DNA from: Heteronotia binoei
Lineage: Eukaryota
Assembly: GCF_032191835.1 (NCBI RefSeq)
Contig: NC_083237.1
Span: 12,152,001 to 12,216,000 of the forward strand
DNA: 64,000 nucleotides
Direction: 5' to 3'
A program made the translations under genes and the position numbers. The first letter of the stretch is position 1; each line of letters starts with the position of its first letter. Positions 1 to 63,381 of the stretch are shown in pieces. The notes beneath the pieces were generated by a model. That model ran no database searches. It was given only the letters and a program-made list of their open reading frames with translations, and was not told the DNA's origin.

Positions 1-10
1 GGTATGTGTC

Positions 11-5804: not shown

Positions 5805-6134
5805 ACAGCAGCATGCTTGTATCGCTACATTCGGCCCTAAGCTCTCATCACCAATCAACTCAGCTTGATTTCACCAAATGTTGATTGGGCTGATTATCAG
5901 AGTGGAGCTGGGGAGGGGGTCACCGTGGCTTTAGATAGCCATCTGGTTCACTTCAAAATGGAGCATGTGAATTAAAGAGAAATGCATGGCATATATAAAA
6001 TAAACAAGATAGACATTAAAGTTGTTTTTTTTAAATACCTCTTGGCATCCACAATACCACAGTTCAGCCCAAATGTTCCCGACCCATGGTCATTTTACCT
6101 TGTTGAACTGACTCTGTGGAGCCTGAAGTACATA

Positions 6135-6688
6135 GACTGGTGTCACACTGTGAAACTGACACGAATTTATCCTATTCTGGAAAAAAAAATCTACTTAAGT
6201 TTGACCTGTTTCTGGGCTATCAGACAGTTGCTGTTGAAGTGGCAAGATCCTGGCATCAGTCAGCGGTTGCCCATTTACACTACAAGCCCGGCTCAATCAC
6301 AGACCCGCTGCTGAAAGGGTTGTCTTTTCCAAAAAGCCTCCTGTGTGCGCGCTCAATCAGAGAAGCGCACAAGCGCACCTTAGAGAGGGCTTGAGGCGAG
6401 GGGGGGAACCTGACCTTGCCAGAAAGGGCTTGGTGCGATCACGCAGCTTTTCCGCTTATAATTCACCCCAAGGCCTTCAGACAGCAGCCGATTATGCGAC
6501 CTACATCCGATTCAGGGAGATGCTACCGGGAAAATCCAGGTAGCATTTTTAAGAGGATAGCAGGCGTCTGGAGTCGGGGTGAGAAATGGGTGCAGCTCGG
6601 AGAGCAGATGTGCTTGTGCGATCGTGTACTTTTAATCCAAATGGGAGGCAGGGCTAGGTCAGGGCAAATCTCTTGTGTGAAACCGCCC
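6135..6688. mobile_element. PIF/Harbinger-like non-autonomous element
   Basis: TIR-like g..ggtttcacac ends flanked by TA; copy at about 61598-62121 at the homologous site; empty site near 60958. Confidence 0.55.
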
Positions 6689-7331
6689 ATACACTCTCTT
6701 CTGTCTCCTGTGCAGCCAGCATGGTGGAGTGGAGCAGTTTTTAATCAGACTAAAACCACTCAGAGTAAAATTTGGAAAGTTTAGGATGAGGCTTCAGATG
6801 CCTACTCAGCCATGAAGTTTACTGTAGAGAGAAATGCATGGCATAAATAAAATAAACAAAATAGAGAAGGAAGTGGTTGTTGTTTTTTCTTAAATTATAA
6901 CTTAAGGCAAAAAGAATTCCAGAGTTTAATCCAAATGTTGCCAGCCCATGGTTATTTTATTTTGTTGAACTGGCTCTGTGGAACCTGTGTAGACTTTTTC
7001 ATCTCCTATTCAGTCAGTGTGGTGGAGTGGAGGGGTTTCTCGTCAGACTACAACCACACTTTTCTGGTGGAATGGTTCTTTGTCAGACTAAAACTTGGAG
7101 TGTCAGTTTAGGATGACGGTTCTGATGCCAACTCTGCCATAAAGTTCATTGTATGACCTCAGGACACTTGCTAAATCTCAGCGTAGCCCACCTCATAGTG
7201 GAGATAAAACAGGGGAATACAATCATATGTAACCTTGAGTTCCATTGAAAAGTTGCTGGCAAATTATGCTAGTTGACTGTCAAAATGAGATGGTTTAACT
7301 TGTAATTTATGAGTCTTCTATGACTGGAAGG

Positions 7332-7455
7332 TAGGGTTGCCAACTCTAACCCTAAAATAAATAGATAAAAAATACAGCAGTACCATTCCCCTGAATACAG
7401 TCTTCATTTCCTCATCCTCCAGGATCTGGCTGTGCTTTCTCTCCCTCCCTCCCTC

Positions 7456-7497
<42 letters not shown>

Positions 7498-8112
7498 AAA
7501 GCAGCCAAAATAAACAAAGGTTGGACGCACACATTTTGTGGCCTCACTGGGGCAATTTACTCACCATGGGAGTTGTTGAATGCTGTATACTCAACCAAGT
7601 TCTTCAGACTAACACAGGGAAACCAGAGGCTCTACTTTACTCTTTACCAGGAGACATTTTGGAGGGGGAAAAGTGCAGGGATTTCTGTGCAGTGGGCAGA
7701 GAACTTCCCACTGCATGCAGATCCTGGTTGGAGGTTCAGGAGCAGTGCTCCTGTGAGCTTCTGCTGAATTGAAGCCCTGCTCTTTACTCTCTATTTTACT
7801 GTGCAAACCACTTCTGAAGGGACTGTAAAACAAACGGAGGGGCTGAGATCCTTCCCTTTCCTTTCTTACAACAGCCACATTGTTCTGCAGGATCACCCCA
7901 CCCCCATTCAGCCTGGCTCCAGAGACTTAAAGGCACACACACCTTTCAAAAAGCAAGCCACTCCCCAAGAGTCTTCAAAGCCTTCCAAGGTTGAAAGGCA
8001 TATGGTGGCTGTTGAGGCAGGGCTTCCCCACACCAGCCAGCTGGCTGGGGGCAGGAAGGAGCCTGCAAAACCGGGGGAATCCCCCACTGGGACTTGGGGA
8101 TTGGCAAGCCTA
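7332..8112 (+). mobile_element. Non-autonomous hAT-like element
   Basis: TAGGGTTGCC-type ends; TSD ctggaagg/gtggaagg; duplicate at about 51060-52064. Confidence 0.7.
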
Positions 8113-9668
8113 GTGGAAGGGCACCTCTGGTTCCAATCCCATGGCTGAATACATACAAGATATAACTTGTTATTTGTCAGTGTGTCAGAATGTTCCCAGA
8201 CTTGTGTAACCCAGGCATTGGAAATAAGGGCAAATTCAAGGCTTAGGGCCTCCTTTCTTAAAGCCCCCCTCCCACTCACACACCTTGGCTGAATACAATA
8301 TGGCACACTGGGCAGTGTGCTCCCCACCCCCAAACTCTTTTCCTTCTGAACCCAACAGTCTAGTAGTCAGTGTCCCAGAAGTGTTGTTTTCTTGTTGAAG
8401 CTGATTCAGATGCATCCCCTCAGAACCAGGCTTTGAATGGGAAGGAAAGTTTTCAGGGTCTTTCTCCTCACCATTCACGAGGAGAAATCAGTTCCAGTTC
8501 ATAGGCAGGCAATCTGTGGGCTAATTCCTCCAAAAGAACTAATTTCCGAAAAGGAAGGGCTCACTCCAGACAAAATTTCTTCAGCGGAGGCCTTTCAGCA
8601 ATTCAGTCATTGTGGGACCCAGGGGGCCGGCGCGGCGGCCCGCCAAAGCAGCCTGTCACTAATAACACAGGTCAAGATGCAGGACAGGAACCCGGAAGTG
8701 ACTGACAGGCTGCTTCAGCGGGCCGCTGCACCGGCCCCCTGGGTCCCACAATGATGGGACCGATGCCACAGGGACGGGCTCGAAACACTCTATAACCCCT
8801 CAAAAGAACAGCAGTCTAGCTCACTTCCCCCGAGCCCTGCCGCCATAAGCCTCAAGGGGGCTCATTTTGCGGCATCTCCCGGCAGGAGGGTGGCACCCGC
8901 ACGGGACACATATCAAATGAAAGAGGGGTCACAGGGCTATCAGAAACACCTGGCGGAGGGAGTCGGGAGCCCACCCCACTGGGGGATCCACACCCCGAAA
9001 GTGATGAAGGTGGCGCAAAAACACAGTGGCCCAAAAACTAGGGGCTATCAGGAGGTCCAGTAGTGGGGCCAGTTTTATTTAACTTTATTTCCCCCTTTCC
9101 CTCTCTATAAATAATCTTGGTGTTTCCGGCGGTGATATTTGGGGGATTTTTGGGGACGTCAAAGGAAGTGCTGTGAAGTCACTTCCTGTTTCCGGCAGTG
9201 GCATTTGGGGGAAATGATGTCATTTGGGGGAAATGATGTCACAGGAAGTGATGTCACTTCCTGCTTCCGGCAGGTGGCCCGGGGAAAATGATGTCACAGA
9301 AAGTGATGTCACTTCCTGTTTCCGGCGGTGGCATGCCGTCACCGAAAGTAACGTCACTTCCTGTTTCCGGCGGCGCACGCCCGCTGCGCACACGCGCACA
9401 CACATCATTCCCCCCCTCAAGGTGTCCCTGGCTGGCCTGCAGATATTATGGCCACCCTAGCATCTGGTTAACTTCAAAATGGAAGGCCAGAATTTTAGAG
9501 AAATGAATGTCATAAATAAAGTAAACAAAATAGAGATTTAAATGCTTTTTTTAAAAAAAAAAATAATAAGTCAAGACATTCACAATACCTGTGTGTAGAT
9601 CAAATGTTGTCAACCCATGGTTATTTTGTCTTGTCGATCTGGGTCTGTGGAGCCTGAGATACATAGAG

Positions 9669-35065: not shown

Positions 35066-35681
35066 CACTTTGGAGGAATGTTATATTTCTGTTTGCTACA
35101 GAGGGAAAAAACCTGCTGAATGATTAGCTACAACATTTTGTGAGCTTGCCAGTTTTGGCAAAGTTACTCGGCCAGTGGTTTAAGTAACTGACATGGAGAA
35201 ACATCAAAAACATATACCCAGTTCAGCATGGTGAAGTTACTGGGGAGGGACCATGGTTGGGGCTAAGCCCTGGTTTTGGGGTGCTTTGAAATATTTTTAG
35301 GTAATGGTGTTCTGGTTTAAGGTCAATGTGTGGTTCTGTTAAAAAATGGTTGATTTGGTCCCCCCACCCCGCCTTCTTCCGTAAGTTTTCCAGAGGAAGT
35401 TACAACCACACTACTACTGCAAGTCCCAATGGCAATTGCTGTGTATAAAGTGGGGCATGGGCTCCATTGAAATTGTAACCATGATGCACAGAGGGGAGGG
35501 GCTGTTACTTCCACCTATGGGCTGCAGGGGCGGGTGTTATTTGCAAAAATTCAGTGCACGCACAACCTCCTGGCAGAGTGAACTACGCCCTCTGCAGCTC
35601 CCCAGTTGTTTCAACTGCCAAAAATGTCATGGGGAGGGCACGCAGGAACCCCCCTCCCATGGTGTCCCGATCAGAAGTACA

Positions 35682-36360
35682 TAAGAACATCAGAGAAGCC
35701 ATGTTGGATCAGGCCAATGGCCCATCCAGTCCAACACTCTGTGTCACATAAGAACATAAGAGAAGCCATGTTGGATCAGGCCAGACTGGCCCATCCAGTC
35801 CAGCACTTTGTGTCACATAAGAACATAAGAGAAGCCATGTTGGATCAAGCCAATGGCCCATCCAGTCCAGCACTTCGTGTCACATAAGAACATAAGAGAA
35901 GCCATGTTGGATCAGGCCAATGGCCCATCCAGTCCAGCACTTTGTGTCACATAAGAACATGAGAGAAGCCATGTTGGATCAAGCCAATGGCCCATCCAGT
36001 CCAGCACTCTGTGTCACATAAGAACAAAAGAGAAGCCATGTTGGATCAGGCCAGTGGACCATCCATTCCAGCACTCTGTGTCACATAAGAACATCAGAGA
36101 AGCCATGTTGGATCAGGCCAATGGCCCATCCAGTCCAACACTCTGTGTCACATAAGAACAACAGAGAAGCCATATTGGATCAGGCCAATGGCCCATCCAG
36201 TCCAACACTCTGTGTCACATAAGAACAACAGAGAAGCCATATTGGATCAGGCCAATGGCCCATCCAGTCCAACACTCTGCGTCACATAAGAACATAAGAG
36301 AAGCCATGTTGGATCAGGCCAATGGCCCAACCAGTCCAACACTCTGTGTCACACAGTGGC
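35682..36360 (-). repeat. Tandem array of 10 x 67-bp CR1 3' termini
   Basis: Unit taagaacataagagaagccatgttggatcaggccaatggcccatccagtccaacactctgtgtcaca; followed by (TA)n. Confidence 0.92.

Positions 36361-36362
<2 letters not shown>

Positions 36363-36447
<85 letters not shown>
36363..36447. repeat. (TA)n microsatellite
   Basis: Direct read; other microsatellites: (TTTC)n at 28281-28370 and (CA)n(TA)n at 36701-36777. Confidence 0.95.
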
Positions 36448-36925: not shown

Positions 36926-37483
36926 GCTTAGAGTGTTTGTCCTGTGTGGAGACAGCAACCTTTAATGAAGTCCACTGGTCAAGAACAACCAGAGATCACC
37001 AGAAGGATTTGCTCTCCAGAGTATAATGCTCTTTGGGAGGCATACCAGGAAAGATGGTCCCATACGTACATTACCCTCAGGCCACAGGGCCTTAAAGGTT
37101 AATACCAGAACCTTGAACCTGATCCAGTATTCAACCTGGAGCTAGTGCAGCTGGCAAACAACTGGTCTGAATATGTGCTATCAAAGGGGTCCCCATAAGG
37201 ACATGGGTCTCTGCATTCTGGACCAGTTGCAATTCCCAGTTCAGTCTCAGGGGTAACCCTATGTAGAGTGAGTTACAGTAGTCTGACCTGGAGATGACCA
37301 TTGCAGGGATTTCTGTAGGCAGGTCAGAGCAAAACAGGAAAGCAGTCAGTTGCCTGATCTATAGTTGGAGGAACACCAGTCTGACAACATTTTGACTAAT
37401 TGAGAAATATCAAGTAATAGGTTCAGTTCAGCCATGGGATTGGAACCAGAGGAGCCCTTCCACTCATGGAAGATTTAGAAATT

Positions 37484-44878: not shown

Positions 44879-45390
44879 ATATAGCCAGTTGCACATGGTG
44901 AAGTCACTGGGGTAGGACCATTGTTGGGGCTAAGCTCTGTTTATTGGGTGCTTTGAACGGTTTTCTGATAACGGTGTTTTGGTTGAAGGTAGAGTTGTGT
45001 TTCTAATAAAAATGGTTTCTTTTCAACCCTCCCCCCTCCCCAACAAACACACTCTTACAGCCAAACTTGAAGTTACTTATTCTGCAAGTTTGCCACAGGA
45101 AGTTACAACCGCACTACAACTCCCAGTCCCAGTAGCGATTGCACTTGGAGGCTGGCAACTCGAAGTCCCTATAAGGACCCAGGTCGCTGCTTTCTGGACC
45201 AGTTGTAATTTCCAGGTCAGCCTCAAGGGTAGCCCTGTGTAGAGCAAGTTACAGTAGTCTAACCTGGATTTGGCTGTGGCATGGATTTCTGTAAATAGAT
45301 TAGGGTGAGACAGGAAGGGGATTCGTTGCTTGATCTGGCATAGGCCCTTCCTGCTTTTGTGTTTACTGTGGCTCTCACCTCCCACTTCCG

Positions 45391-48300
45391 TCAGTTTATT
45401 GATCACCCTTTTGATTTTGAATGGACCTAGATATTTCAGCGCAAGCTTTCGACACCCTTGCGGGAGGGGCAGGTTTTTGGTGGATAGAAACACCGTTTCC
45501 CCTTCTTTCAGCTCCCACTGGAGGGCATGCTTTTTGTCAAAGTGCCGTTTGTACTCCCTCTTTGCCTCCTCCAGATTCTCTTGAATTACTTTCCACCCCT
45601 CCCTCAGTCCTTCCCACCATTGTTGACATGAAGTGGCCCCCTGAGGACCGGATGGTAAGGGGAGGTTGGGGAAAGGCTTCCCTTCATACCCATTGACAAT
45701 TTGGAAGGGGGAGGTCTTGGTAGAGCTATGAAAGCTGTTATTGTACCCATACTCCGCAAAGGGCAAAAGCTCTACCCAATTTGTCTGTTGGTAGTTGATG
45801 TAGCACCGCAAGTATTGTTCCAGAAGCCTGTTCACCCTCTCCGTCTGTCCGTCCGTTTGCGGGTGGTACGCGGAGCTAAGTCCCTGCTCGATGCCGGCCA
45901 ATTTGCAAAACTCCCGCCAGAAGTTGGCAACGAACTGCGGTCCGCGGTCACTAATGACCTTTTCAGGGAATGAGTGTAGTCGGACCACGTGATTAAAGAA
46001 TAATTGGGCCAACTTCTTGGCTGTGGGGAGTTTTTTGCAGGGAATGAAATGGGCTTGTTTAGAGAAGGTGTCGACCACCACCAGTATCACTGTCTTCCCT
46101 TGGGAAGGGGGTAGTTCTACTATAAAGTCCATTGACACCACGGCCCATGGGCGACTAGCCGTGGGGAGAGGGACGAGGTGGCCCGGTGGCTTCCCCCCAC
46201 CCCCGCCGTTTGGACATAATGCAAGTGGGGCATGTGAACACGAATTCGGAGACATCTTTTTTTAATCGGGGCTACCAGAACTGCCGAATGATTAGATTAA
46301 GGGTTTTCACATACCCAAAGTGGCCCGCTAGGTGGTTAGAGTGGCATTGTTCCAAAACTTCCTTTCTCAAGGATTTCGGCACGTAGATTTTCCCTTTGTG
46401 AAGCCAGACCCCCCCCTCGCCCTTCTCGAGCCCTTCTGGGCGTTCGCCTCCTTCTAGTTCTGCTTCTGTGGCGAAATGCTCTTTTCTGGGTAGTTCAGGG
46501 GTCCCAGTCTGTTTCCCTGAGCGGGTGGTGACCCCTCCTGCGACTGCAGAGGGGGGGATGAGAGAATCGACTACCTCCTCTCTCTGGCTTTCGTGCTGAG
46601 GCAGGCGCGATAGCGCATCGGCCAAAAAGTTTTTGGTGCCGGGGATGTATTTTAACACGAAGTCAAACTTAGCAAAGAACCCCGCCCATCAGATCTGCTT
46701 GGCCGTCAGTTTACGGCGGCCGGTGAGGGCCTCTAGATTTTTGTGGTCAGTCCAGATTTCGAAGGGGACTCGGGCTCCCTCTAGCCAAGATCTCCAGGTT
46801 TTTAAGGCAAACATTACTGCAAAGGCTTCCTTGTCCCAGACTGACCAGTTCCTTTGTTCATTGGAAAATTTGTGGGAGATATATGCACAGGGGCGTAGTT
46901 CCCCCCCTTCATTCTTCTGCATCAATATGGCTCCTACGGCGACGTCGGAAGCGTCACATTGCACCACGAAGGGTTTTAATTCATTGGGGTGAGCCAATAT
47001 TGGTTCAGAAGTGAAGAGTTGTTTGAGCTCTTGGAAGGCGCGGTGGCATTCTGGTGTCTAAGTTAAGCGCGCGCCGGGCTTTTTTGCTTCATCCCCTTTT
47101 CCCTTCGTTTTGAGGAGCTCCGTGAGGGGGAGCATCACCCGGGCGAACCCCTTTATGAATCCGCGGTAGAAATTTGCGAACCCGAGGAAGGATTGTAGCT
47201 GCCGTCGGGTTCTGGGGGGTTCCCAGTCTAGAACCGCTTGAATTTTGGCGGGGTCCATGGCTAGTCCCTCCCCTGACACTCGGAAACCCAAGTAGTCTAG
47301 TTCTGTTTTGTGAAACTCACATTTAGACAATTTGGCATACAATTTGTTTTTACACAGGGTTGTCAACACTTTTCTCACCAGGGGTACATGCGATTCTAGA
47401 TCTTTCGAATAGATAATGATGTCATCAAGGTACACCACCACCCCCTTGTACAAAAATTCCCTTAACACCTCATTTATGAAGTTCATGAAAACCCCTGGTG
47501 CCCCCTGAAGCCCGAAGGGCATCACTAAGTACTCAAATTGTCCCATGGGAGTGTTGAATGCTGTTTTCCACTCGTCTCCCTCTTTAATCCTCACGCGGAA
47601 GTACGCATCTTGGAGATCGAGCTTGGTGAAAATCTTTCCCTCGGCCACAGTGTTCAATAGGTCCCTTATCAGCGGGATCGGGTAAGCATTGGAACTTGAA
47701 ATCCCGTTTATCCCGTGAAAATCTGTGCAAAGTCTAAGCCCCCCATCCTTTTTCTTGCGGAACAGGACCGGGGCCGCATGGGGGGCCGTCGCTGGTCGGA
47801 TGAACCCCCGTTTCAAGTTTTTATCAATGAATTTTCTCAGTTCCGCTTTCTCTGCCCACCCCATCGAGTACAGCTTTGCCTTTGGTAGCGCCTGCCCTGG
47901 GATTAGTTCGATAGCGCAGTCCGTCGGGCAGTGCGGGGGGAGCTCGTCGGCCTCCCGTTCGCTAAAGGCTTTCTTCAAGTCCCTGTATTCTTTGGGTATC
48001 GACCTCACTTCCTCAAGTGTGAGGCAAAGTCTCTCGTTCTGGGGGGGTGCTTTCGGGCCCCACTCGGCCCTCCAGTGGTGGTGTTCACACCGCCAGTCCG
48101 GGAACTGCACAATCTGCTCGGCCCATCGAATGTCTGGTTGGTGCCTGGCCAGCCACCCGGCTCCCATCACTACATCGAAGGAGGAGGATGGGGCTATGAC
48201 AAAAGTCTCTACTCCCCAATGTTCCTCCGTTCCCATGGGGGTGGCCTGGGTTTCTAGTGTGCAAGGCTCTCCCCTCATAATTGATCCATCCATTTGTTCG

Positions 48301-48545
48301 AATTGGATGGGGTGGGGAAGGGGGGTTGTGGCTAGCCCCAGCGCCTCCACCAGGCGCGGGGTGATGATGTCTCGGGTGCACCCGGAGTCGATCAGGGCCC
48401 TGGCGTGCATGAATCTTTTGAGATTGGGGTTCAAGAGGGTGACTGCCATAAATAATAGCCCCCCGGTAATTCTCACCGTTAGTAGTGCCGGCGTTTGGTC
48501 GACCTGCCTCGCGGCACCAATTAAAGCAGGTCGCTGTCGTTTCCC
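45391..48545 (-). pseudogene. pol: Pol (protease, RT, RNase H, integrase) in the -1 frame, inactivated
   Basis: ALIDSG, YLDD, CDASD..TDHKNL, HHCC and D-D-E motifs; stops at 47058 (TAG), 46689 (TGA) and 46272 (TAG); +1 frameshift in a G-run near 46199. Confidence 0.92.
48485..48545 (-). promoter_or_regulatory. -1 programmed ribosomal frameshift signal: G GGA AAC followed by a predicted H-type pseudoknot
   Basis: Heptamer at 48545-48539 in the short gag/pol overlap; 5-nt spacer; stem 1 cgacctgc/gcaggtcg; stem 2 gtgccg/cggcac. Confidence 0.8.
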
Positions 48546-50125
48546 GCCGACTCTTGCTCCCAGGACTCCTCACTGGATTCTTCTATGGTGGTAATATCCT
48601 CGTCAATCGCCAAGGAGGTGGCGACAGCGCCCCGACTGGGCTCCTTCAAGCGGCTACCTTTCTTCTTTTGTGCCGTGGATGCTGGCTTTGGCGGCGTCGG
48701 GGTTGGTGTTGGTTTCACCGGGCAGTTGGCGGCCAGGTGGTTGGGGTCCCCACATCGGAAGCATTTCCGCGCAGTGGCCGAGGGGGTCGAAGTCATGGGG
48801 CCTCGCTTTTCCTCGGCTTTGCTGGGGGAGGGGGTTGGCTTCCCTCCCTTCTTACTTTGCTGCTGCCGCCGCATTCCGACGTGCTGGAGGTCCGTTTCCA
48901 CCTCTCCTGCCAGCTGGATCCAGCCCACCAGGGTGTCTGGCCTTCCTTGGTGGTAACACCGATCGAGGATGTTCGCGTTCAGGCCGTTCTTGAATGCGGT
49001 ATATTTCATAACTTCGTTCCAACCCCGGGCCGCCGCGCAGAGCCCCATGAACTCGGTAGCGTACTCGCGGGTGGTGCGGTTGCCTTGTTCTATCCTTTGT
49101 AGGGCCACGATGGCTTTCTCCTCTCGTAGGGGGTCTCCGTACTGTCGGAGCATCGCCTGTAGGAAATCGGCCACCGTGGCTAGCTCGGGCTTCCTCCCCG
49201 TGTAGAGCCCTACGTACCATTTCCGAGCCGGCCCTCGTAGTTTGGAGGCGATGTGGTCGACCCGGCTCGCCTCTGTGGGGTAGCCCACTCCCCAGTGCGT
49301 GAAGAACGTGTTGCACTGGATTGTGAAATACTCCACTTCGTCCCCGTCTCCATCGAACGTGATTTTCAGTTCCCTGGTTCCTCCCCCGTCGCCCCCGGCC
49401 GGGGCGATCGGGGCCGGCAGCGCCGGGGCAATCGGCCCGCCGGGTGGCGGGGCCGGGGGGCCCACCGGCGGTCCAGCCGGTGGACCGGCGGGCGGCCCGG
49501 CCGGCGGACCTGCGGGTGGCCCGGTCGGGGGACCGGCGGGCGGTCCGGCTGGTGGTCCTGCCGGCGGTCCTGCGGGGGGACCCGCGGGAGGTCCTGCCGG
49601 GGGCCCCGCTGGTGGTCCGGCTGGTGGTACTCCCCCGCCCGGGGGGCCTGCGGGAGGTCCAGCCGGGGGCCCCGCGGGCGCCCCTCCGCCCGGGATCGGG
49701 CCCACGGGTCCTGCTCCCTGGAGTGCGCGTATCTGGTCGTGTATCGCCCCCAGGTTCTGCTGCATCTCCTCGGCCATCAGGGTTCGAGATGCGTGGACCT
49801 CGTCGTGGATCTCCTTCACCCAATCGAACAGTTCGTTGCATAGTGTTCGGATTGGGTCCCCTCCGCCGTAGGTGCCGAGCCCTTCGTCCCTGGGCTCGTC
49901 CCCCTCGTCCTCTCCGCCGCCTGTGGCGAGGATCCGGTAACGTTGCTCCGCGGCCTCCATTGCGGCCGTCGACTTCCTCGGGCTCCAGGTTCGGGGAGGG
50001 AAGGCATCCACAGAGAAAGGCGCTGGGACTTTCAGCTTTCTCCTCGCCCCCGTTACCTTCGGGTCGAGGGGTTCCTCATCGGGTGGAATGTTGGGCTCTC
50101 CGTTGTCTGGAGCCTTTGCCGCCAT
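48521..50125 (-). CDS. gag: Gag with coiled-coil N-terminus, (PPAG)n linker, capsid-like domain and CCHC zinc knuckle; intact ORF
   Basis: Probable ATG at 50125 (MAAKAP), since the upstream ATG lies in the LTR; retrotransposon gag-like FDGD..YATEF..A..GWNE region; CFRCGDPNHLAANC knuckle. Confidence 0.88.
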   Translation of the reverse strand: MAAKAPDNGEPNIPPDEEPLDPKVTGARRKLKVPAPFSVDAFPPRTWSPRKSTAAMEAAEQRYRILATGGGEDEGDEPRDEGLGTYGGGDPIRTLCNELFDWVKEIHDEVHASRTLMAEEMQQNLGAIHDQIRALQGAGPVGPIPGGGAPAGPPAGPPAGPPGGGVPPAGPPAGPPAGPPAGPPAGPPAGPPAGPPAGPPTGPPAGPPAGPPAGPPAGPPVGPPAPPPGGPIAPALPAPIAPAGGDGGGTRELKITFDGDGDEVEYFTIQCNTFFTHWGVGYPTEASRVDHIASKLRGPARKWYVGLYTGRKPELATVADFLQAMLRQYGDPLREEKAIVALQRIEQGNRTTREYATEFMGLCAAARGWNEVMKYTAFKNGLNANILDRCYHQGRPDTLVGWIQLAGEVETDLQHVGMRRQQQSKKGGKPTPSPSKAEEKRGPMTSTPSATARKCFRCGDPNHLAANCPVKPTPTPTPPKPASTAQKKKGSRLKEPSRGAVATSLAIDEDITTIEESSEESWEQESAGNDSDLL

Positions 50126-50178
50126 CGGGCCAGGTTGCCAGTACAGATAAGTCCAAGACAAAGGGATTACTGTTATAA

Positions 50179-50484
50179 TGTCAGGACTTGGAGGAACTTC
50201 AGTCGAGTCCAATACTTGTTACAAGTTAAGACTTTTATTGAAGAACTATAGTACCAGAGTAACGAAATAACAGTAATGGCGACTCCTGGCCGTTGGTTAC
50301 ATTTTATGCTAGCCGCAAAGCACAATAAAGCAATTATTCACACGGTCTCAACTATTTTATGTGTGCCCTAAATAGTTGGCATAGCAGTGGGGCCAGGGTT
50401 AATGACCGTTGTCAAGCACTCTAAATTACAACATGGAGTCAGTATGGCTAAAGCAAACAAGCAGAAAGGTTACAAGTCCTGACA
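50179..50484 (-). mobile_element. 5' LTR of the Gypsy element (306 bp)
   Basis: tgtcaggacttg...caagtcctgaca ends; minus-strand CATAAAA at 50302-50308 and AATAAA at 50234-50239. Confidence 0.9.
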
Positions 50485-51382
50485 GCAGGAAGAAAAGGGT
50501 GTGGAACATGAGGCCTAGTCATTTCTTTCTCTCAAAGGACTGAATTGCTGAAAGGCCTCCGCTGAAGAAATTTTGTCTGGAGTGGACCCTTCCTTTTCAG
50601 AAATCAGTTCTTTTGGAGGAATTAGCCCACAGGCTGCCTGCCTAGGAACTGGAATTGATTTCTCCTCTTGAATGGTGAGGAGAAAGGCCCTGAAAACTTT
50701 CCTTCCCATTCAAAGCCTGGTTCTGAGGGGATGCAGCTGGATCAGCTTCAACAAGAAAACAACACTTCTGGGACACTGACTACCGGACTGTTGGGTTCAG
50801 AAGGAAAAGAGTTTGGGGGCAGGGAGCACACTGCCCAGTGTGCCATATTGTATTCCCCATGTTGTAATGAATAGTTACTTTGCTTAAGCCAAGGTGGGTG
50901 AGTGGGAGAGGGGCTTTAAGAAAGGAGGCCCTATGCCTTGAATTTGCCCTTATTTCCAATGCTTGGGTTACACCAGTCTGGCAACATTCTGACACACTGA
51001 CAAATAACAAGTTATATCTTTTATATATTCAGCCATGGGAACCAGAGGTGCCCTTCCACTAGGCTTGCCAATCCCCAAGTCCCAGTGGGGGATTCCCTCG
51101 GTTTTGCAGGCTCCTTCCTGCCCCCAGCCAGCTGGCTGGTGGGAGGAAGCCCTGCCTCAACAGCCCCCACGTGCTTTTCAACCTTGGAAGGCTTTGAAGA
51201 TTCTTGGGAATGGCTTGCTTTTTGAAAGGTGTGTGTGCCTTTAAGTCTCTGGAGCCAGGCAGAATGGGGGTGGGGTGATCCTGCAGAACAATGTGGCTGT
51301 TGTGAGAAAGGAAAGGGAAGGATCTCAGCCCCTCCGTTTGTTTTACAGTCCCTTCAGAAGTGGTTTACACAGTAAAATAGAG

Positions 51383-51885: not shown

Positions 51886-54138
51886 GAAGCACAGCCAGAT
51901 CCTGAAGGATGAGGAAATGAAGACTGTATTCAGGGGAATGGTACTGCTGTATTTTTATGTGTTTATTTTAGGGAATGGGAAAGTCTCCTGGCTCTACCTC
52001 CAAAGTCTCCCAGCCACACCTTCAAAGTCCCCAGGTATTTTCTGAGTTAGACTTGGCAACCCTACTTTCCAATCATAGAAGACTCATAAATTACAAGTTA
52101 AACCATCACATTTTGACAGTCAACTAGCATATTTCACCAGCAATTCTTCAATGGAACTCAAGGTTACATATGATTGTATTCCCCTGTTTTATCTCCACTA
52201 TGAGGTGGGCTAGGCTGAGACTTAGCAAGTGTCCTGAGGTCATACAGTGAACTTTATGGCAGAGTTGGCATCAGAACCGTCATCCTAAACTGACACTCCA
52301 AGTTTTGGTCTGACAAAGAACCATTCCACCAGAAAAGCATGGTTGTAGTCTGACAAGAAGCCCCTCCACTCTACCACACTGGCTGAATAGGAGATGGAAG
52401 AGTCTACACTCAGGCTCCACAGAGCCAGTTCAACAAGGTAAAATAACCATGGGTTGGCAACATTTGGATTAAACTCCGGAATTGTTTTTGCCTTAAGTTA
52501 CTATTTAAAAAACAAACAACCATTTCCTTCTCTATTTTGTTTATTTTATTTATGCCATGCATTTCTCTCTACAGTAAACTTCATGGCTGAGTAGGCATCT
52601 GGACCCTCATCCTAAACTTTCCAAATTTCACTCTGACAAAGAAACAAGAAGTTACAAGCACGCTGCTATTTCCAGTTCCAGTAGCAATTGCAATTGAAGG
52701 CTGGCAAATCTAGGTCCCTATAAGGACCCGGCCACTACTTTCTGGATCAGTTGTAATTTCCAGGTCAATCTCAAATGTAGCCCTACGTAGAGCAAGTTAC
52801 AGTACTCTAACCTGGAGGAGACTATGGATTTCTGGAGGTAGGTCAGGGCAAGACAGGAAGGAGGCTGGTTGCCCAATCTGGCTTAGTTGGCAGAACACCA
52901 GTGTAGAGCTGTGGAGATATATGCTGTTGGGCTGAGCAATTAAACTACTCAATTTGTATATTAGAAGGAGTGTGTGTAGGAGGACTGGAAGAAAAACAAA
53001 GAGGAAGCAGAATGTGTAGCATGAGGCCTAGTTATTTTGTCTCTCAAAGGACTGGATTGCTGAAAGGCCTCAGCTGAAGACGTTTTGTCCATTGTGGGTC
53101 CTCCCTTTTTAGAAATCATTTATTTTGGAGGAGTTAGCTCCCAGACCTCCCGCCTATGAACTGGAGCTGATTTCCCCTCTCAAATATTGAGGAAGGAGGC
53201 CCTGAAAACTTACCTTCCCTCTTGAGGCTTCCTTCTAAGGGACTGTTACTGGACCAGCTTCAACAAGAAAACAGCAATTCTGGGACACTGACAACTAGAC
53301 TGTTGGGTTTGCCTTCCCTACATTAGAAATAATGAAGGATAGGAGCACCTTCTTTTGGGGCTCAAAGAATTGGACCCCATAGTTCAATCTTTTTTAAACT
53401 TGGAGAGCATTTTGAGGAGACCCATCAGATGCTATGCTGAAAATTTGGTACCTCTACCTCAAAAAACCGCCCCTCCAGAGCCCCAGATACTCTGAGATTA
53501 ATACTCCATTATACCCTATGGCTCAGCAGACATTTCCGTCCCTCCCACCCTTGGTTCTGATGACCCTGAAGCTCCGGAGAGCCTCCAAACCAGGGACCCC
53601 CTGCCCCAACCTGGGAATTGGCACCTCTACCACGAGTAGCTGAATTTCCAAGTTTTTCACAGTAACACAGGGCAACCAAAGGTTCACGTTTACCTTCACA
53701 CTATGCAAATAACCTCTGCAAAGATTGTGCAACAAACGAAGGGTCTGGGCTCCTTTCACAGCCATGTTGTTCTGCCTCCTCCCCCCCTGCTCCCCTTCAG
53801 CCTCAAAGACGCAGACACACCATCCAAAGAGGAAGGCTTTCTAATAGAGACAAGCCTCCGAAGGTGGAAAGTCACATGATGGTTGTGGGGGCGGGGCTTC
53901 CCCCCGCCAGCCAGCTGACTGGGGGCGGAAAGGAGCCTAGAAGAACCCCCGCTGGGACCTGGGGATTGGCAAGCCTAGGTGGGGAGCACACTACCCAGTG
54001 TGCCATATTGTATTTCCCCTTTTGTAATGAATAGTTATATATTGCTTAAAGCAAGGGGTGTGTGTGGGAGGTTCTAAGCCTTGAATTTGCCCTTATTTCC
54101 AATGCCCGGGTTACACCAGTCTGGCAACATTTTGACAC

Positions 54139-54458
54139 TGTTGTATATGTGATCAGAATTGTGACTAATGTATGGAGTTGTTGCCTGGCTCATTGGAGCC
54201 TGTAGGACTAAGCTTGGGGGCTCAGGAACAATAGGAAGTAGGATCCAAATCCCTTCTGCCTTACTCCAGTCACGAACCCCCTGCTGGTTTGAATGGTCCA
54301 ATAGCATGCTAGCGCGGGAACCTTGAGTGTACATATAGTTGGCCCCGTTGGCCCAGTCTTCAGTCTTTGAGTGCAGTGCTATACTATGCTGTATCTAATA
54401 AAAGAGCTATGATCACTACCACCTCACCTCATCACTGTGTGGAACCCACTATATTACA
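54139..54458 (+). mobile_element. Duplicated copy of solo LTR 11-330
   Basis: TG..CA ends, TSD gacac, same insertion site in the inverted duplicate. Confidence 0.8.
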
Positions 54459-55705
54459 GACACACGGACAAATACCAAGTTATAGGTTGTATTCAGCCAT
54501 GGGATTGGAACCAGAGGTGCCCTTCCACTCACAGAAGACTCATGTGTTACAAGTTAAACTATCACATTATGACAGTCGCCCTAGCACATTTTGCCAGCAA
54601 CTCTTCCATGGAACTCAAGTTGGTTTACATATGATTGTATCCTCCTGTTTTACCTCCACTCTGAGATGGGTTAGGCTGAGACTTAGAAAGTGAACTTCAT
54701 GGCTGAGTAAGCATCTGAACCCTCATCCCCAACTGACATTCCAAGTTTTAGCCAGACAAAGAACCACTCCACCAAAAAAGAAAAAAATTGTTTTAGTCTG
54801 GCCAAAAAACAAAACAAAAACATCACACTTGCTGAATACAAGATGGAAGAGTCTATTCTCAGGCTCCACAGACAAGGTGAAATACTCATGGGTTGGCAAC
54901 ATTTGGGTTAAATGCTGGAATAGTTTTTGTCTTAAAGCTATTTAAAAGAAAAACAGTTCAATCTCTATTTTGTTTCTTTTATTTATGTCATGCATTTCTC
55001 TTTTTTATTTATTTATTTACTTTGGATTTAGATCCCGCCCCCTCCATGAATGGGCTCAGGGGGGCTAACAATGAACCAGAATAACAGTATTAAATTACAG
55101 TATTAAAAACAGTAAACTTGCCAATATTAGAATCAATTCAAACAACATTGTGGCGCTTGTAATTGATGTCCTCCATTTTGAAGTGAAACAGATCTAAATC
55201 TAAAGCCGCTGTGACCCCCTCTCCAGCTCCACTCCGATAATCACTTCTTTTGGAGGAGTTAGCCCCCAGACCGCTTGTCTATGAACTGGAGCTGATTTCT
55301 CCACTCAAATGGTGAGGAAGGAGGCCCTGAGAACTTTCGTTCCCTCTTGAGGCCTGATTCTGAGGGACTGCGACTGGACCAGCTTCAACAAGAAAACAGA
55401 ACTTCTGGGACACTGACTACTGAGCCTTTTTCGGCGGGGAGGGCAAGATATAAATTAAATTAAATTTAATTTTAAAAATAAAAATACTGGACTGTTGGGT
55501 TGGAAGGGAAAGAGTTTGGGGAGTGGGGCGCACACTACCCGATGTGCCATATTTCCCCTGTTATAATGAATAGTTTCTTAACCCAAGGTGTGTGAGTGGG
55601 CGGCCCTAAGCTTTGAATATGTCCTTATTTCCAATGCCCGGGTTACACCAGTCTGACAACATTTTGACACAATGAGAAATACCAAGTTATAGGTTGTATT
55701 CAGCC

Positions 55706-56350
55706 CAATGGCGTTGGGAGGGGGGGCGGGCGGGGCGGGCCGCCCCAGGTCCGTGGGGTCCCCGCATTGCCAAGGGGGCTCCCAAACAATAGCCATGTTG
55801 CTGCGCTGCGAGGGGGAGCGCGCGCGCACGGCGGGGCTCCTCGTTCCCTTCCCTTCCCCCTCTCCCCTTTTTCCCCCCTCTCTCTCATGCAATCGGGCTG
55901 AAAGCGCGGGAAAGGCGCGTCGCTTTTTCTCCACCCCCCTCCCTCGTTCCCTCGCCTCAGAATGCGCGCGTGCGGCCTTATCCCAGGTTCCATGAGTTGC
56001 CAGACCAACGCGAAGTCCCAACTGGTCATGATTATCTCCCTTCCTTGCCCCAATCGGTCCCGAGGCGTTTCTCTCGGCGAGAGCAAGTCTCTTTTCTGAC
56101 CTCTTGAGGCCGGTTCTTTGCGGGAAAGAAGGCCGGCGTTGGCGCGCCTTTTCAGCCGAGGGGAGGCGCCAGTCCGAGGAGAGCCGTGCGCGGGCCTGTG
56201 CTCCGACTTGGGCATGTCTGCAGAAGCGGCAGCCAGACAGCAGCTGCCGCTATCCTCCGTGGGGCCAGGTAAGAGGGCATGGGATAGCATCGTGGCTGGT
56301 TTCTGCCCTTTTCCAGTCCCTGCCGCTGTCAAGGGCGCTTGCGAGTTGGA
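55706..56350 (+). promoter_or_regulatory. CpG island with GC boxes and a putative first coding exon (ATG 56214, donor CAG|GTAAGA at 56268/56269)
   Basis: Dense CpG; ggggcggg box; ATG followed by 18 codons and a strong 5' splice site; no downstream exon recognised. Confidence 0.5.
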
Positions 56351-56892
56351 GCCAGGGCCCATCATTAGGGAAAGGGATTCTTCAAATGTTCCCTCCCCTG
56401 GGCGGAAACCTTGTCGCCTGGACATGTCCGGGCAAGCTGGGAACAGTCTCAAGTATTCTGCATTTGCCTCCAAGATGTCACTTGAGCATATGTGATGCTC
56501 TTCACATACAGCATAAGCCTTGTTATTAATGGCCTGACTTTAAACTGCCTACCAGCTATGAATGGCTCTGCTCAGCTATATATGGCTTTGCTCACTGTGC
56601 TGGATTCCTCGTCTGATAAAGTGTGCTTAAGAGCACACGAAAGCTTACGTTCTAAATGAGAATTGGTTGGTCTTAAAGGTGCAACTTGACTCCTGCTTTG
56701 TTTAAAATGCTCGGAACACTTGGGCGCCTGACTTAAAGGAATTTTGTCAACTCCTGATAATGTATCTGAGGAAGTGTGCGTACACCCAGAATGTAAGGAA
56801 GTGTGCATACACCCAGAATTAAACTTTCTTTAGCCTTAAAGGTGCCTCTGGACTCAAACTTCCTACTATTGCTTCTAAAGCTTATACCCCAA

Positions 56893-56929
<37 letters not shown>

Positions 56930-57519
56930 GTTCTTTGATACATTGCTTCATGACTAGACATACCGTTCACCAGTGGAACCAGAAACTTGCATCTTTCCCC
57001 CCTCTAAATGTGACTTTGGAACCTTCTTTCCTAACAATTAGAAATCCAATTTTCACGAAGGAGAAAAATAGCTTAGAGTCCCCTTCTTCTCGTTTTCAAT
57101 ATGCTAACCATCTGGGGCTGTGGTGACTAATTTTGAATGGATTTAGAAATATCCTAGTGTGTGGATCCCCAAAGAATTCTTTGAGCCTCTCCAAAGCAAT
57201 GGTATTTTTATCCCCCCCCCCCCCGAAAGGACAGCATTTAAATTAAAATTCCAACATTGGCGACAATGTGCCTTTTCACATTGGATAGCTTTGTGTCATT
57301 GTGAAACTGAATTAGCAATTCAGTCTCAAAATGGAGGGCCTGTAAGTTGTCCGAGGGAGGGCAGGGGTGGGATCTGGAGTAGAGACAGTCTTCTGTGGGC
57401 TGAGAATGCATTAGACATATTTCAAGAGGACTGCATCCTGGCAACTTTGCTGTATGTATTTAGCATGTTTTTACTTACATCGAATTGCTCTTTCATTTGG
57501 ATAAGAGGCCAAGGTCTGG

Positions 57520-58392
57520 CTCTGCTGGTGGACTTTCTGATGGCACCTGGGTTTTGGCCACTGTGTGACACAGAGTGTTGGACCAGATGGGCCATTGGCC
57601 TGAACCAACATGGATTCTCTTACATTCTTATGTCTGAGGCAGTGGTGCCGGGTATTCTTGGTGCTTGGGGGGCAAGAGTGGGAGGGCTTCTGGAGTTCTG
57701 GCCCCACTGGTGGACCTCCTGATGGCACCTGGGTTTTTTGGCCACTCTGTGATACAGTGTGTTGAACTGTGTTGAACTGGATGGGCCATTGGCCTGATCC
57801 AACATGGCTTCTCTTATGTTCTTAGGTCTGAGGCAGTGATGCTCCATATTCTTGGTGCTTGGAGGGGCACAGTGGGAGGGCTTCTAGTGTACTGGCTCCT
57901 CTGATGGACCTCCTGATGGCACCTGGGTTTTGGCCACTGTGTGACACAGAGTGTTGGACCAGATGGGTCATTGGCCTGATCCAATGTAGCTTCTGTTATG
58001 TTCTTATGTCTAGGGCAGTGATGCTCTGCATTCTTAGAGCTTGGGGGGCAACAGTGGTCGGGGGAGGCTTCTGGAGTTCTGGCCCTGCTTGTGGTAGACT
58101 TCCTGATAACCCCTGGGCTTTGCCCACTGTGTGGCACAGAGTGTTGAACTGGATGGGCCGTTGGTCCGTTGGTCTGATCCAACATGGCTTCTGTTACGTT
58201 GTTATGTCTAGGGCAGTGATGCTCTGCATTTTTAGTGCTTGGGGGGCAACAGTGTGGGGGAGCTTCTGGAGCTCTGGCCCAACTGGAGGACCTTTTGATG
58301 GCACCTGGGTCTTTTTGGCCACTGTATGACACAGAGTGTGTTAGACTGGATGAGCCACTGGTCTGACTCAACATGGCTTCTCTTATGCTCTT
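57520..58392 (+). repeat. Tandem array of about 4.5 diverged 180-200-bp CR1 3' UTR units
   Basis: Repeated ggcagtgatgct...ggccactgtgtgacacagagtgttgg...ttatgttcttatgtct. Confidence 0.82.
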
Positions 58393-58644
58393 AGGGACAC
58401 TGACTTGAAATGTACAGACACCAGTCACCTAGCTCTTGTAAGCAAGGGTTTTTTTATACAGAGAAAATGTCATGCATTACCAGAGCTTTTTGAGTAGAAA
58501 AAGCCCAGCAGGAACTCATCTGCATATTAGGCCACACCTCCTGACATCACTATTGTTTTTGCAGGGCATTTTTGGTAGAAGAAGCCCAGCAGGAAGTCAT
58601 TTGCATATGAGACCACACCCCCTGACACCAAGCTAGTAAGCAGT

Positions 58645-59956
58645 GGGGTGCCGCAGGGCTCAGTACTGGGTCCCATGCTCTTTAACTTGTTCATAAATGA
58701 TTTGGAGTTGGGAGTGAGCAGTGAAGTGGCCAAGTCTGCAGATGACGCTAAATTGTTCAGGGTGGTGAGAACCAGAGAGGATTGTGAGGCACTCCAAAGG
58801 GATCTGTTGAGGCTGGGTGAGTGGGCAGATGAGGTTCAGTGTGGCCAAGTGCAAACTGCAAAGCAATGCACATTGGGGCCAAGAATCCCAGCTACAAATA
58901 CAAGTTGATGGGTTGTGAACGGCAGAGACTGACCAAGAGAAAGATCTTGGGGTCATGGTAGATAACTCACTGAAAATGTCAAGACAGTGTGCGTTTGCAA
59001 TAAAAAAGGCCAACGCCATGCTGGGAATTATTAGGAAGGGAATTGAAAACAAATCAACCAGTATCATAAACCCCTGTATAAATCGATGGTGCAGTCTCAT
59101 TTGGAATACTGTGTGCAATTCTGGTCACCGCACCTCAAAAAGGATATTATAGCATTGGAAAAAGTCCAGAAAAGGGCAACTAGAATGATTAAAGGGCTGG
59201 AACACTTTCCCTATGAAGAAAGGTTGAAACTCTTGGGACTCTTTAGCTTGGAGAAACGTCAACTGCGGGGTGACATGATTAGGGTTGCCAAGTCCAATTT
59301 AAGAAATATCTGGGGACTTTGGGGGTGGAGCCAGGAGTCTTTGGGGGTGGAGCCAGGAGACATTGGGGGCGGAGCCAAGAGCAAGGGTGTGACAAGCATA
59401 ATTGAACTTCAAGAGAGTTCTGGCCATCACATTTAAAGGGACTGCACAAATTTTTAAATGCCTTCCATAGGAAATAATGAAGGATAGGGGCACCTTCTTT
59501 TGGGGCTCATAGAATTGGACCCCCTGGTCCAATCCTTTTGAAACTTGGGAGGTATTTTGGGGAGAGGCACTAGATGCTATACTGAAAATTTGGTGCCTCT
59601 ATCTCAAAAAACAGCCCCCCCAGAGCCCCCGATACCCGCGGATCAATTCCCCATCATTCCCTATGGGAATCGTTCATAGAGGTGCATGATGGCTCTGGGG
59701 GCGGGGCTTCCCCCGCCGGCCAGCTGGCTGGGGGAGGGGGGAAGCCTGTAAAACCAGGAGATCCCCCTCTGGGACCTGGGGATTGGGAAGCCTAGACATG
59801 ATATAGGTTTACAAGATAATGCATGGGATGGAGAAAGTAGAGAAAGAAGTACTTTTCTCCCTTTCTCACAATACAAGAACTTGTGGGCATTCAATGAAAT
59901 TGCTGAGCAGTCAGGTTAAAACGGATAAAAGGAAGTACTTCTTCACCCAAAGGGTG
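58645..59956 (+). mobile_element. CR1 LINE fragment interrupted by a hAT element
   Basis: [24 protein letters not shown] and FSLEKR motifs. Confidence 0.9.
59280..59794 (+). mobile_element. Non-autonomous hAT-like element nested in CR1
   Basis: Perfect TSD gacatgat interrupting the CR1 GDMI codons; same family as 1947-2710. Confidence 0.88.
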
Positions 59957-61282
59957 GAATAGATAAAGAACTGCTTTTAACAAATAGCTGACTGGCTTAT
60001 TCTTACTTATGGGACATCCAGGGATCCCTGGAAAGATCTGATAGTAGCAACTAGCATAAAGGCAAGGGAAATCCTAGCTTGGGAGAAAATCTAAGTGATT
60101 AGACGTTCCATGGGGACCTCCTTATAGCTTTGCTTGTTGAAAACCACATCAGTATGCCTGTTTTTGTTTTCCTTGTTTTTCTTGTAAGCTTGCTTAATAT
60201 AGAAGTCCCACAAGTTCAGGGCACAAGGGGAACAGCTGGGCCAGCAGGCTGCTTGTGGCATTTCCCCCTGTCACATGGTGTGGTGGGGTAATCAGGTTAT
60301 CAATCACATGACCTAGATCGCACCAGCAGTGCCATCTTGGGGGGGGGGGTGCCGCCCGCAAAGTGACACCACTTCCTGTTTCCCCCCCACAAGTGGTGGC
60401 CATTTTGGGGAAGTTACATCACTTCCTGTTTCCAGCAGGGCTCCCTCGCAAGTGGTGGCCATCTTGCGGAAGTGACATCACCGGAAGTGACATCATATCC
60501 TGTTTCTGGCGGCGTGCACACACATAGGGGGGCCCACATAAATCTTGGGCCCCGGGCCCCCAAAGCCCTAGCTACGCCCCTGATTCAGCCTTGGACCTGG
60601 AACCAGTTCCACGCAAAGAAGACTCATAAATTACAAGTTAAACCATCACATTATGATAGATAACCTAGCATATCTTGCCAGCAACTCTTCAATGGAACTC
60701 AAGGTGGTTTACATATGATTATATCCACCCATTTTATATCCACTTTGAGGTGGGCTACGCTGAGACTTAGCAAATGTCCTAAGGTCATACAGTGAACTTC
60801 ATGTCTGAGTAGGCATCTGAACCCTCATCCTAAATTGACATTCCAAGTTTTACTCTTACAAAATACCAATCCACCAGAAAAAGAAAAGAATGGTTTTAGT
60901 CTGATTAAGAACCACTCCACTCCACCCTGCTGGCTGAATAGGAGACAGAAGAGAGTCTATGTACCTCAGTCTCCACAGAGCTAGTTCAACAAGGTAAAAT
61001 AATCATGGATTAGCAACATCTGTGCTAAATTGCAGTATTGTGGATGCCTAGAATTATTAAAGAACACTTTAATCTCTATCTTGTTTATATTATATATACC
61101 ATGCATATCTCTCTAATTCCCAGCCTCCATTTTGAAGTAAACCAGATGCATATCTTCAGCCACTTTGACCCCCTCCCCAGCTCCACTCTTATAATCAGCC
61201 CAAGTAACATTAGTCAAATCAAGTTGAGGTGATTGGTGATGATAGCTTAGAGTGGAACATAGCCATTCAAGCATGGTACTGT

Positions 61283-62455: not shown

Positions 62456-63381
62456 TTACTTGGGATTCCCAACCCACAGTTTTGACAGAGTGGCCTTCAT
62501 CTCTTTATTCCTGAATGTGTAGATGACAGGATTCAGAAATGGGGTTACTGTGGTGTAGAACACGCTCAACACAGCATCCATGTAGTCCTGAGATGCTGGC
62601 CTCAGGTAACAGAAAACAATGGGGACATAATAGATTACTACCACAGTGATGTGGGCTGAGCATGTGGAGAAGGCCCGGCGATGCCCTTCACTGCTGCTGA
62701 TCCTCAAAATGGCAGAGACAATATAGACATAGGAGGGGAGGATAAGGATGAAGCAGGTTACAGCCACCAAGCTGACATCCACAAAGATCACTATCTCATT
62801 GAGAGTTGTGTCCATACAAGGCAGCTTCAGCAGGGCAGGGATGTCACAAAAGATGTAGTCGATCTGGTTGTTCCATCCATAGGGCAATTGAAAGGTGAGG
62901 GTCGTCTTTAACACTGAGTTCACGCAGCCTCCGATGATGGAACCCAAACAGAGAGTGAGGCAGGCTCTCCAATGCATGATGTGGCTGTAGTGGGGGGCCT
63001 TGCAGATCGCAATGAAGTGGTCGCAAGACATAATGGTGTAAAGGAGACATTCAGCACATCCGATGGAATTCAGAGAGAATACTTGACATATACATTCTCC
63101 AAAAGAGATGATTTTCCCACCAGGGAATAAACCTGCAATCAATCTGGGGAACAGAACAGAGGAAAAACCCATATCCAGGAAGGACAACTGACAGAGGAAC
63201 CAGTACATGGGCTTGTGCAACTGAACATCAGATGCCACCACCCAGACAATCAGGGAATTTCACAGAGAGTCAGAATGTACATGATCAAGAAGAAGAGTAA
63301 CAGTAGCACCTTCAGTTCTTTGGGGAATGAGAAGCCTGAGATGATGAACACAGCCGGTGCTTTTTGATTTGGACACTCCGT
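62456..63381 (-). pseudogene. Full-length OR pseudogene
   Basis: Start codon reads ACG (cgt at 63379-63381); 1-nt deletion near 63260 (aatttcaca versus aatttccaca in paralogs) shifts the frame; MAYDRF altered to MSCDHF. Confidence 0.9.

Follow-up and report, generated by a model that had tools for sequence, protein, structure and literature searches.

Non-autonomous hAT elements that carry genomic DNA as filler between their ends have been described in the lizard Anolis carolinensis as hobo_AC and hobo-N (Novick et al. 2011, PMC3014272). The filler of these elements holds old CR1, SINE (short interspersed element) and Penelope fragments (PMC3014272). In plants, elements of a similar kind are known as Pack-TYPE elements, which include Pack-MULE, Pack-CACTA and Pack-hAT (PMC8903248, PMC5861414), and gene fragments have also been reported from Ds elements of maize (PMC3260210). 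By definition, Pack-TYPE elements belong to plants (PMC8903248), and the transduplication of genes that encode proteins is stated, in a passage of one earlier paper, to be unknown in animals (PMC2572040). A search of a limited literature collection for Pack-hAT elements of geckos or squamates found no report. Internal capture of host DNA by transposons with terminal inverted repeats (TIRs) is regarded as common in plants and rare in animals. Here, we describe element A, a hAT-type insertion in an olfactory-receptor cluster of the gecko Heteronotia binoei. It lies in a stretch of 64,000 nucleotides (NCBI RefSeq assembly GCF_032191835.1, contig NC_083237.1, positions 12,152,001 to 12,216,000 of the forward strand) that was analyzed as a whole and is termed the window below; coordinates are window positions unless stated otherwise. 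Together with two sister copies from the same cluster, B and C, element A has a Pack-type design with variable cargo, and the cargo of A may well have been copied from the 5' region of a host gene.

The A family and Anolis hobo-N have much in common. Both are young lizard hAT elements with 8-bp target-site duplications (TSDs) and short TIRs, both combine common ends with very different interiors made of genomic DNA with old repeats, and both carry signs of recombination between elements. However, the Anolis termini read TAGGCTTG..., whereas those of the A family read CAGTGGCGTAGG and CAGGGGCGTAGC. Neither the hobo-N TIR, TAGGCTTG(M/A)(T/G)C, nor descent from hobo_AC was found for A, the ends of which are CAATGGCG and CAGGGGCG. 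In the Anolis paper no CpG islands, promoters or exons are reported from the filler, judged by a look for the words 'exon', 'CpG' and 'host gene' that found none (PMC3014272), while the cargo of the A family starts with a CpG island in all three copies. Element A works like the Anolis hobo-N families and is not a member of them. Plant Pack-TYPE elements resemble the A family in several ways: in both, TIR elements that are non-autonomous keep their ends and hold chromosomal DNA that appears captured and differs from copy to copy, both seem biased to GC-rich sequence from gene 5' regions, and both raise the local GC content at the landing site. In contrast to A, plant Pack-TYPE elements are defined by a match to a parental gene and are described as a plant phenomenon, and the cargo of A resembles a promoter and a first exon rather than internal coding exons. 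Helitrons of vespertilionid bats (PMC4224331) are vertebrate DNA transposons that acquire and spread host promoters and exons, as the A family would do if its cargo was captured. Unlike the A family, these move as rolling circles, lack TIRs and 8-bp TSDs, and capture through read-through at their ends (PMC4224331), whereas capture in the A family would be internal.

Results

Element A is a transposed unit of a hAT-type family

Element A is bracketed by a perfect 8-bp duplication, ATTCAGCC, and the insertion is defined by these features:

55706-60582, plus strand: element A, hAT-type insertion, a discrete block of 4877 bp
55698-55705: left TSD copy, ATTCAGCC, present as a single copy at paralogous empty sites
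60583-60590: right TSD copy, ATTCAGCC
54491-54498: paralogous empty site for A within the window
54433-54570, 50965-51100, 8075-8210 (reverse) and 37340-37480: paralogs with the A site empty, from alignment to the rejoined flanks
55706-55722: 5' TIR of A, imperfect, 17 bp
60566-60582: 3' TIR of A

When the flanks of A are joined with one copy of the 8-mer, they align without interruption to four paralogous modules in the window, each of which has a single (A/G)TTCAGCC. A fifth empty site is found in a nearer duplicate to the left of the window (L011 7447-7012, 92-96% identity). L011 and L014 are pieces of the DNA around neighbouring receptor genes (CM063339.1, GCA_032191835.1), which adds about 66 kb of the cluster; positions 1-9125 of the window are identical to L011 11803-20927. 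The flanks of A are part of a repeated module, and 7tm_4 matches identify the region as an olfactory-receptor cluster. A first-pass annotation of this DNA, made from the letters alone, had proposed an 8-bp duplication around a 4877-bp block, a module that continues across the block with only one 8-mer in its paralogs, and an olfactory-receptor setting. Our analysis agrees on each of these points, with exact copies of the duplication on either side and the continuous module seen in five paralogs. Element A is a mobile, transposed unit of a hAT-type family.

The termini fit this assignment. The imperfect inverted repeats described earlier were recovered with 12 matches over 17 positions (CAATGGCGTTGGGAGGG and, as the reverse complement of the other end, CAGGGGCGTAGCTAGGG). 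Shuffles that preserve composition put p at about 0.001, and within 600 bp of either end of A a score of 12 is reached in no other register. The ends of copy C match at 10 of 12 positions (CAGTGGCGTAGG against CAGGGGCGTAGC). As termini of the family we take CAGTGGCGTAGG... at the 5' end and ...CTACGCCCCTG at the 3' end, and both ends agree with the YARNG start of hAT elements, with CAATG or CAGTG at the 5' end and CAGGG, read as the reverse complement, at the 3' end. The 8-bp TSD that characterizes the hAT superfamily is perfect in all three copies (ATTCAGCC for A, GGTTTACA for B, TGTAGGAG for C).

The earlier view that A encodes no transposase also holds. None was detected among the 61 open frames of at least 45 amino acids in A (Pfam on the ten longest and most unique) or in the open frames of B and C (Pfam), and no hAT transposase was found in the other window frames scanned. 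The sole Pfam match in open frames of the three copies is a fragment of a long interspersed element (LINE) with a reverse-transcriptase domain (RVT_1) in A. Rfam and transfer RNA scans of A gave nothing relevant. Metagenome scans with the 3' terminus returned 0 matches, and those with the 5' terminus returned 9, all of them G-rich chance matches of at most 31 nt. Elsewhere in the window, the 3' terminus of a distant relative occupies 9120-9430 and ends at 9430 on the plus strand. It carries five subterminal repeats, CCGGAAACAGGAAGTGAC(A/G)TCAC, and neither a matching TSD nor a 5' end was found for it.

Only the ends are conserved among copies A, B and C

The comparison among copies is based on the following features:

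L011 7011-5040 (CM063339.1 12145238-12147209): copy B, 1972 bp, TSD GGTTTACA, cargo at L011 5406-6903
L014 17206-19069 (CM063339.1 12268050-12269913): copy C, 1864 bp, TSD TGTAGGAG, cargo at L014 17306-19003
55813-59958 (CM063339.1 about 12207813-12211958): cargo of A
60706-60713: empty site for B with a single GGTTTACA; B occupies the counterpart in the duplicate module left of the window
55706-55812, plus strand: family 5' terminal region, G-rich and CpG-rich; the likeness to the ends of B and C extends over about 100-107 bp
59959-60582, plus strand: family 3' module, of which B shares 60214-60582 and C the last 66 bp

Copy B is inserted in a close duplicate (92-96% identity) of the module that harbors A, and that duplicate is empty at the A site. 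The reciprocal filled and empty states of A and B imply that both insertions are younger than the duplication of the module. With three copies in about 130 kb sampled of the receptor cluster, the density suggests a very abundant family.

At their 3' ends A and B are 98.1% identical over 369 bp (60214-60582; 98.9% in aligned columns), and A and C are 98.5% identical over the last 66 bp. The 5' ends of the three copies can be aligned over only about 85-107 bp, with 85-89% identity in aligned columns, and CpG-to-TpG changes in B make up many of the differences. Between the terminal modules, BLAST detected no similarity among the interiors of A, B and C. Since the 3' ends are 98-99% alike and the 5' likeness stops at about 100 bp, at least two of the three interiors have been replaced by foreign DNA. 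A comparison of cargo among copies with the same ends had been suggested in the first-pass annotation, and its outcome is clear: the interiors are unrelated. They are replaceable, copy-specific cargo, and only the ends are conserved in the family. The copies thus combine TIRs and a TSD, no transposase, and an interior that varies between copies with common ends, which is the architecture of Pack-TYPE elements. This establishes a Pack-type design with variable cargo.

The cargo opens with a CpG island

Two features at the start of the A cargo are of particular concern here:

55813-56300, plus strand: cargo part 1, CpG island, promoter-like, without likeness to the cargo of B or C
56214-56268, plus strand: putative first coding exon, from the ATG through 18 codons and 1 further nt, called from sequence only

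Between 55700 and 56300 the GC content is 0.59-0.70 and the observed/expected ratio (o/e) of CpG is 0.69-1.08, against 0.33 for the whole window. The start of the A cargo (element positions 108-600) has a GC content of 0.63, a CpG o/e of 0.87 and 43 CpG. Corresponding values are 0.64, 0.67 and 47 CpG for B, and 0.60, 0.75 and 34 CpG for C. Hence, in 3 of 3 copies the first 500-700 bp of the cargo, directly adjoining the 5' terminal module, are of CpG-island grade, and the cargo then becomes CpG-poor. The family 3' module has a CpG o/e of 0.27-0.31. The CpG island previously noted in A is therefore genuine, although its first 107 bp or so (55706-55812) are terminal sequence of the family and not cargo.

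The ATG and the GTAAGA donor word of the earlier description are both present, the ATG at 56214. Position 56268, given there as the donor, is however the last base of the putative exon, and the GT of the donor word CAG/GTAAGA follows directly at 56269-56270. The GC skew of A turns from negative to positive at about 56055-56105, some 110-160 bp upstream of the ATG. A switch in GC skew at start sites is typical of CpG-island promoters, as known from work on R-loops and GC skew. In the cargo of B, CCAAT and TATA-like words lie upstream of an ATG, a GTGAGG donor is present as well, and the orientation is that of A; the cargo of C has a GAG/GTGAGC word about 50 bp in. The 18-codon putative exon has no Pfam match, and a protein search with the 257-aa open frame that runs across the CpG island of A found no homologue.

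Contigs from public runs end at the borders of the element

We compared A with four public runs, all of which are stored as contigs; depth is read as qualitative here and not as copy number. A DNA contig of run X2 agrees with 55706-55862 apart from 2 differences; the agreement sets in exactly at 55706, the 30 letters outside are unlike, and a second X2 contig matches 55895-56075 perfectly. At the other end, 60410-60582 is matched by an RNA-library contig of X1, which parts from A exactly at 60582 and goes on for 30 unlike letters. From 59959 rightward A is matched by contigs of X1 and X3, with 224 and 100 unlike letters to the left. By the breaks at 55706, 60582 and 59959, these independent data show that the two ends of A, as well as the inner border of the 3' module, are real boundaries. 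Locus-specific variants of A include 55754 and 55780. We also considered that the 30-letter overhangs of X1 and X2 are adaptor or graph artefacts. This was ruled out, given the precise ends at the termini and the other flanks of B and C.

In the RNA libraries the summed depth climbs toward the 3' tip (32, 46 and 269 in X1; 268, 419 and 715 in X3), which fits the nested retention of 624, 369 and 66 bp in the copies. RNA-library contigs of about 99% identity and a depth of about 1-4 cover 55772-57073, including the putative intron. None lies over the left flank or over 57074-57445, and the right flank (60608-60950) is covered at 1.1-2.3. The low coverage of 55772-57073 would fit either weak transcription from the island or RNA of a near-identical copy or donor. 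A protein search of the assembled public runs with the 69-aa frame of the 3' module gave no match.

Remaining interior of A and neighbouring features

Downstream of the island, the interior and the 3' module of A contain:

56301-59958, plus strand: cargo part 2, CpG-poor and intron-like, with old repeat fragments
56516-56701: high-copy piece
56896-56928: (AC)n
57515-58393: tandem array, 4.6 x 194 bp
58481-58636: two units of about 80 bp
58637-59279 and 59795-59958: LINE reverse-transcriptase fragment (RVT_1), in two parts
59280-59794, plus strand: nested miniature inverted-repeat transposable element (MITE) of another hAT family, 515 bp, with TSD GACATGAT at 59272-59279 and 59795-59802
60331-60510: subterminal repeats in the 3' module

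That the interior holds repeat remnants, as in the first-pass annotation, is borne out by the LINE RVT_1 fragment, the 194-bp array and the high-copy segments. The LINE fragment is cut at 59958, where other copies of the 3' module diverge. We asked whether the nested repeats arrived after transposition and rejected this, since both ends of the LINE fragment are truncated, the right one just where the 3' module starts. LINE copies without the nested MITE occur among the public-run contigs, as seen from a joint of 59271 to 59795. The MITE starts with TAGGGTTGCC... and, as the reverse complement of its other end, TAGGCTTCCC...; these ends (TAGGGTTG / TAGGCTTC) are nearer to the Anolis hobo-N type than the ends of A. 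Further copies of the MITE lie in the window at 1303-1693, 1947-2324 and 53310-53521, and the MITE is abundant in the public runs. The 194-bp array has a SINE-like core in common with a 67-bp tandem array at 35679-36364. The subterminal repeats of the 3' module hold words that we take to resemble binding sites for ETS (CCGGAAGTG / ACTTCCTG) and YY1 (GCCATCTTG) and a CpG-decayed cAMP response element (TGACATCA). Judged by their letters, these words are candidate transposase-binding sites, promoter elements or both.

Two further features lie outside A. A Ty3/gypsy-type retroelement on the minus strand (45077-50212) has long frames for gag, protease-reverse transcriptase and integrase (Pfam Retrotrans_gag, RVT_1 and rve). 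An olfactory-receptor frame on the minus strand (62456-63241), 1.9 kb from A, is about 45 N-terminal residues short in comparison with the 7tm_4 profile and has no exact protein on record. It is probably a pseudogene.

Discussion

We consider it somewhat favored, with a probability of roughly 0.55, that A is a non-autonomous member of a young, multi-copy hAT-type family and has cargo copied from the 5' region of a host gene. A transposase encoded elsewhere would move A by cut-and-paste and thereby make the 8-bp duplication, and the members of the family would retain only sequence required in cis; at the 5' end this is about 100 bp, at the 3' end 66-624 bp. The cargo of A, about 4.1 kb long, would consist of a promoter-like stretch with a CpG island, what may be a first exon with its donor, and 3.7 kb of intron-like DNA. 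Most simply, it would be a single contiguous copy that runs from a host promoter through the first exon and covers about 3.7 kb of intron 1. A contiguous capture that reaches into intron 1 agrees with the old repeats, which are truncated, and with the cut of the LINE at 59958. As to the mechanism, gap repair after excision may copy a sister element inward from its ends. Synthesis would then stall in the G-rich 5' terminal region, switch to an ectopic GC-rich template in open chromatin (a CpG island) for a run of 1-4 kb, and return to the 3' module at a point that varies. Such a route is plausible, since Anolis hobo elements take up genomic filler with old repeats (PMC3014272). The origin of the cargo in a host gene, the status of the exon, the activity of the promoter and the repair mechanism are what we infer from these data. 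The original proposal that a hAT element moved a promoter and exon 1 of an unrelated gene stands in so far as A is mobile, lacks a transposase and has an interior that is cargo. As to the identity of this cargo, promoter and exon 1 of a host gene are a plausible reading.

Several observations weigh against this explanation. No donor locus was found, though no nucleotide search of the genome was made for one. The putative exon has only 18 codons (55 nt), and by chance a donor-like word with GT should turn up about once in 600 bp. Splicing from 56268, for which a check had been suggested, did not appear: no joint from this position is among the joints listed in the public-run contigs. The putative intron (56402-57018) is covered at a depth of about 3, the same as the exon bin. 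In X2, which is small, the 5' 370 bp of A, 263 bp of which we count as cargo, reach a depth of 13-17 and the remaining cargo is absent, and these 370 bp may be a repeated module of a subfamily rather than a single capture. Pure capture also leaves unexplained that the 5' termini are 11-15% diverged, against 1-2% at the 3' termini. Possible causes of this contrast are recombination between lineages, which has been described in Anolis, and mutagenic repair. Lastly, the TSDs have no clear fit to the hAT target preference nTnnnnAn; among the three sites, that of A has the T at position 2 only, that of C the A at position 7 only, and that of B neither.

Long GC-rich leaders are known in some hAT elements, for example maize Ac, and the CpG island and exon might be the promoter and transposase leader of the lineages themselves. 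A, B and C would then derive from three diverged autonomous hAT lineages, each of them with a fast-evolving leader of its own, the 3' ends of which were homogenised by recombination between elements. Recombinant elements would be expected to have such termini, with differences of 11-15% at the 5' end and 1-2% at the 3' end, the terminus of A type is accompanied by the next 263 bp in X2, and swapping of ends is documented in lizard hobo-N families (PMC3014272). Yet in none of A, B and C is the leader followed by remains of a transposase, and the three supposed leaders, with their short ATG exons, are without any mutual similarity. They still have a CpG o/e of 0.67-0.87, although that of the 3' module has decayed to 0.27-0.31. 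This scenario requires three separate lineages in addition to recombination. A related alternative in the first-pass annotation, in which the exon is the leader of the element's own transposase, is weakened by the 98-99% likeness of the 3' ends against nothing in common beyond about 100 bp at the 5' end. We regard an origin of the island within the transposon lineages as unlikely. Also unlikely, and to a slightly greater degree, is that the cargo is GC-rich genomic filler and not the 5' end of a gene, with the ATG...GT arrangement a chance pattern, as in the filler-bearing hAT elements of Anolis and without promoter content. The brevity of the exon call (55 nt), the chance expectation for donor-like words, the lack of a splice joint among those listed and of coding similarity in the Pfam and protein searches, and the ordinary repeat-rich DNA of the remaining cargo all speak in its favor. 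However, CpG-island-grade DNA is scarce in vertebrate genomes, and it nevertheless opens the cargo in three out of three copies. Filler would not account for the switch in GC skew, like that of a promoter, which A shows about 110-160 bp upstream of its ATG, nor for the CCAAT and TATA-like words upstream of the ATG of B. The same applies to the near-identical RNA-library contigs over 55772-57073, with none on the left flank or over 57074-57445 and the right flank at 1.1-2.3.

A more radical view is that no transposon inserted here and that the block arose as an artefact of the assembly, or was inserted between duplicated modules by means other than transposition. The flanks do lie in a repeated module with 92-96% duplicates, which is prone to mis-joins, and none of the public-run contigs was seen to span either junction. 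But the 8-bp duplication is exact and has adjoining TIRs, the same ends recur in B and C, each with a perfect TSD of its own, and the outside contigs end precisely at both termini. We consider an artefact very unlikely.

The preferred reading, a non-autonomous element with cargo from a host-gene 5' region, can be extended from A to the family as a whole. Tentatively, and at slightly less than even odds, we propose that a recently active gecko hAT family preferentially copies host CpG-island promoters together with the first exon and part of intron 1. It would scatter them at high density and seed start sites and donors, including in CpG-poor olfactory-receptor clusters, and would represent a vertebrate counterpart of Pack-TYPE elements with a promoter bias. 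If this is true, the family would offer a tractable system for template choice in repair-coupled template switching. The dispersal of promoters and first exons would give rise to new start sites, chimeric transcripts and antisense RNAs. Furthermore, the family would be a source of CpG islands for regions that normally have none, such as the olfactory-receptor clusters.

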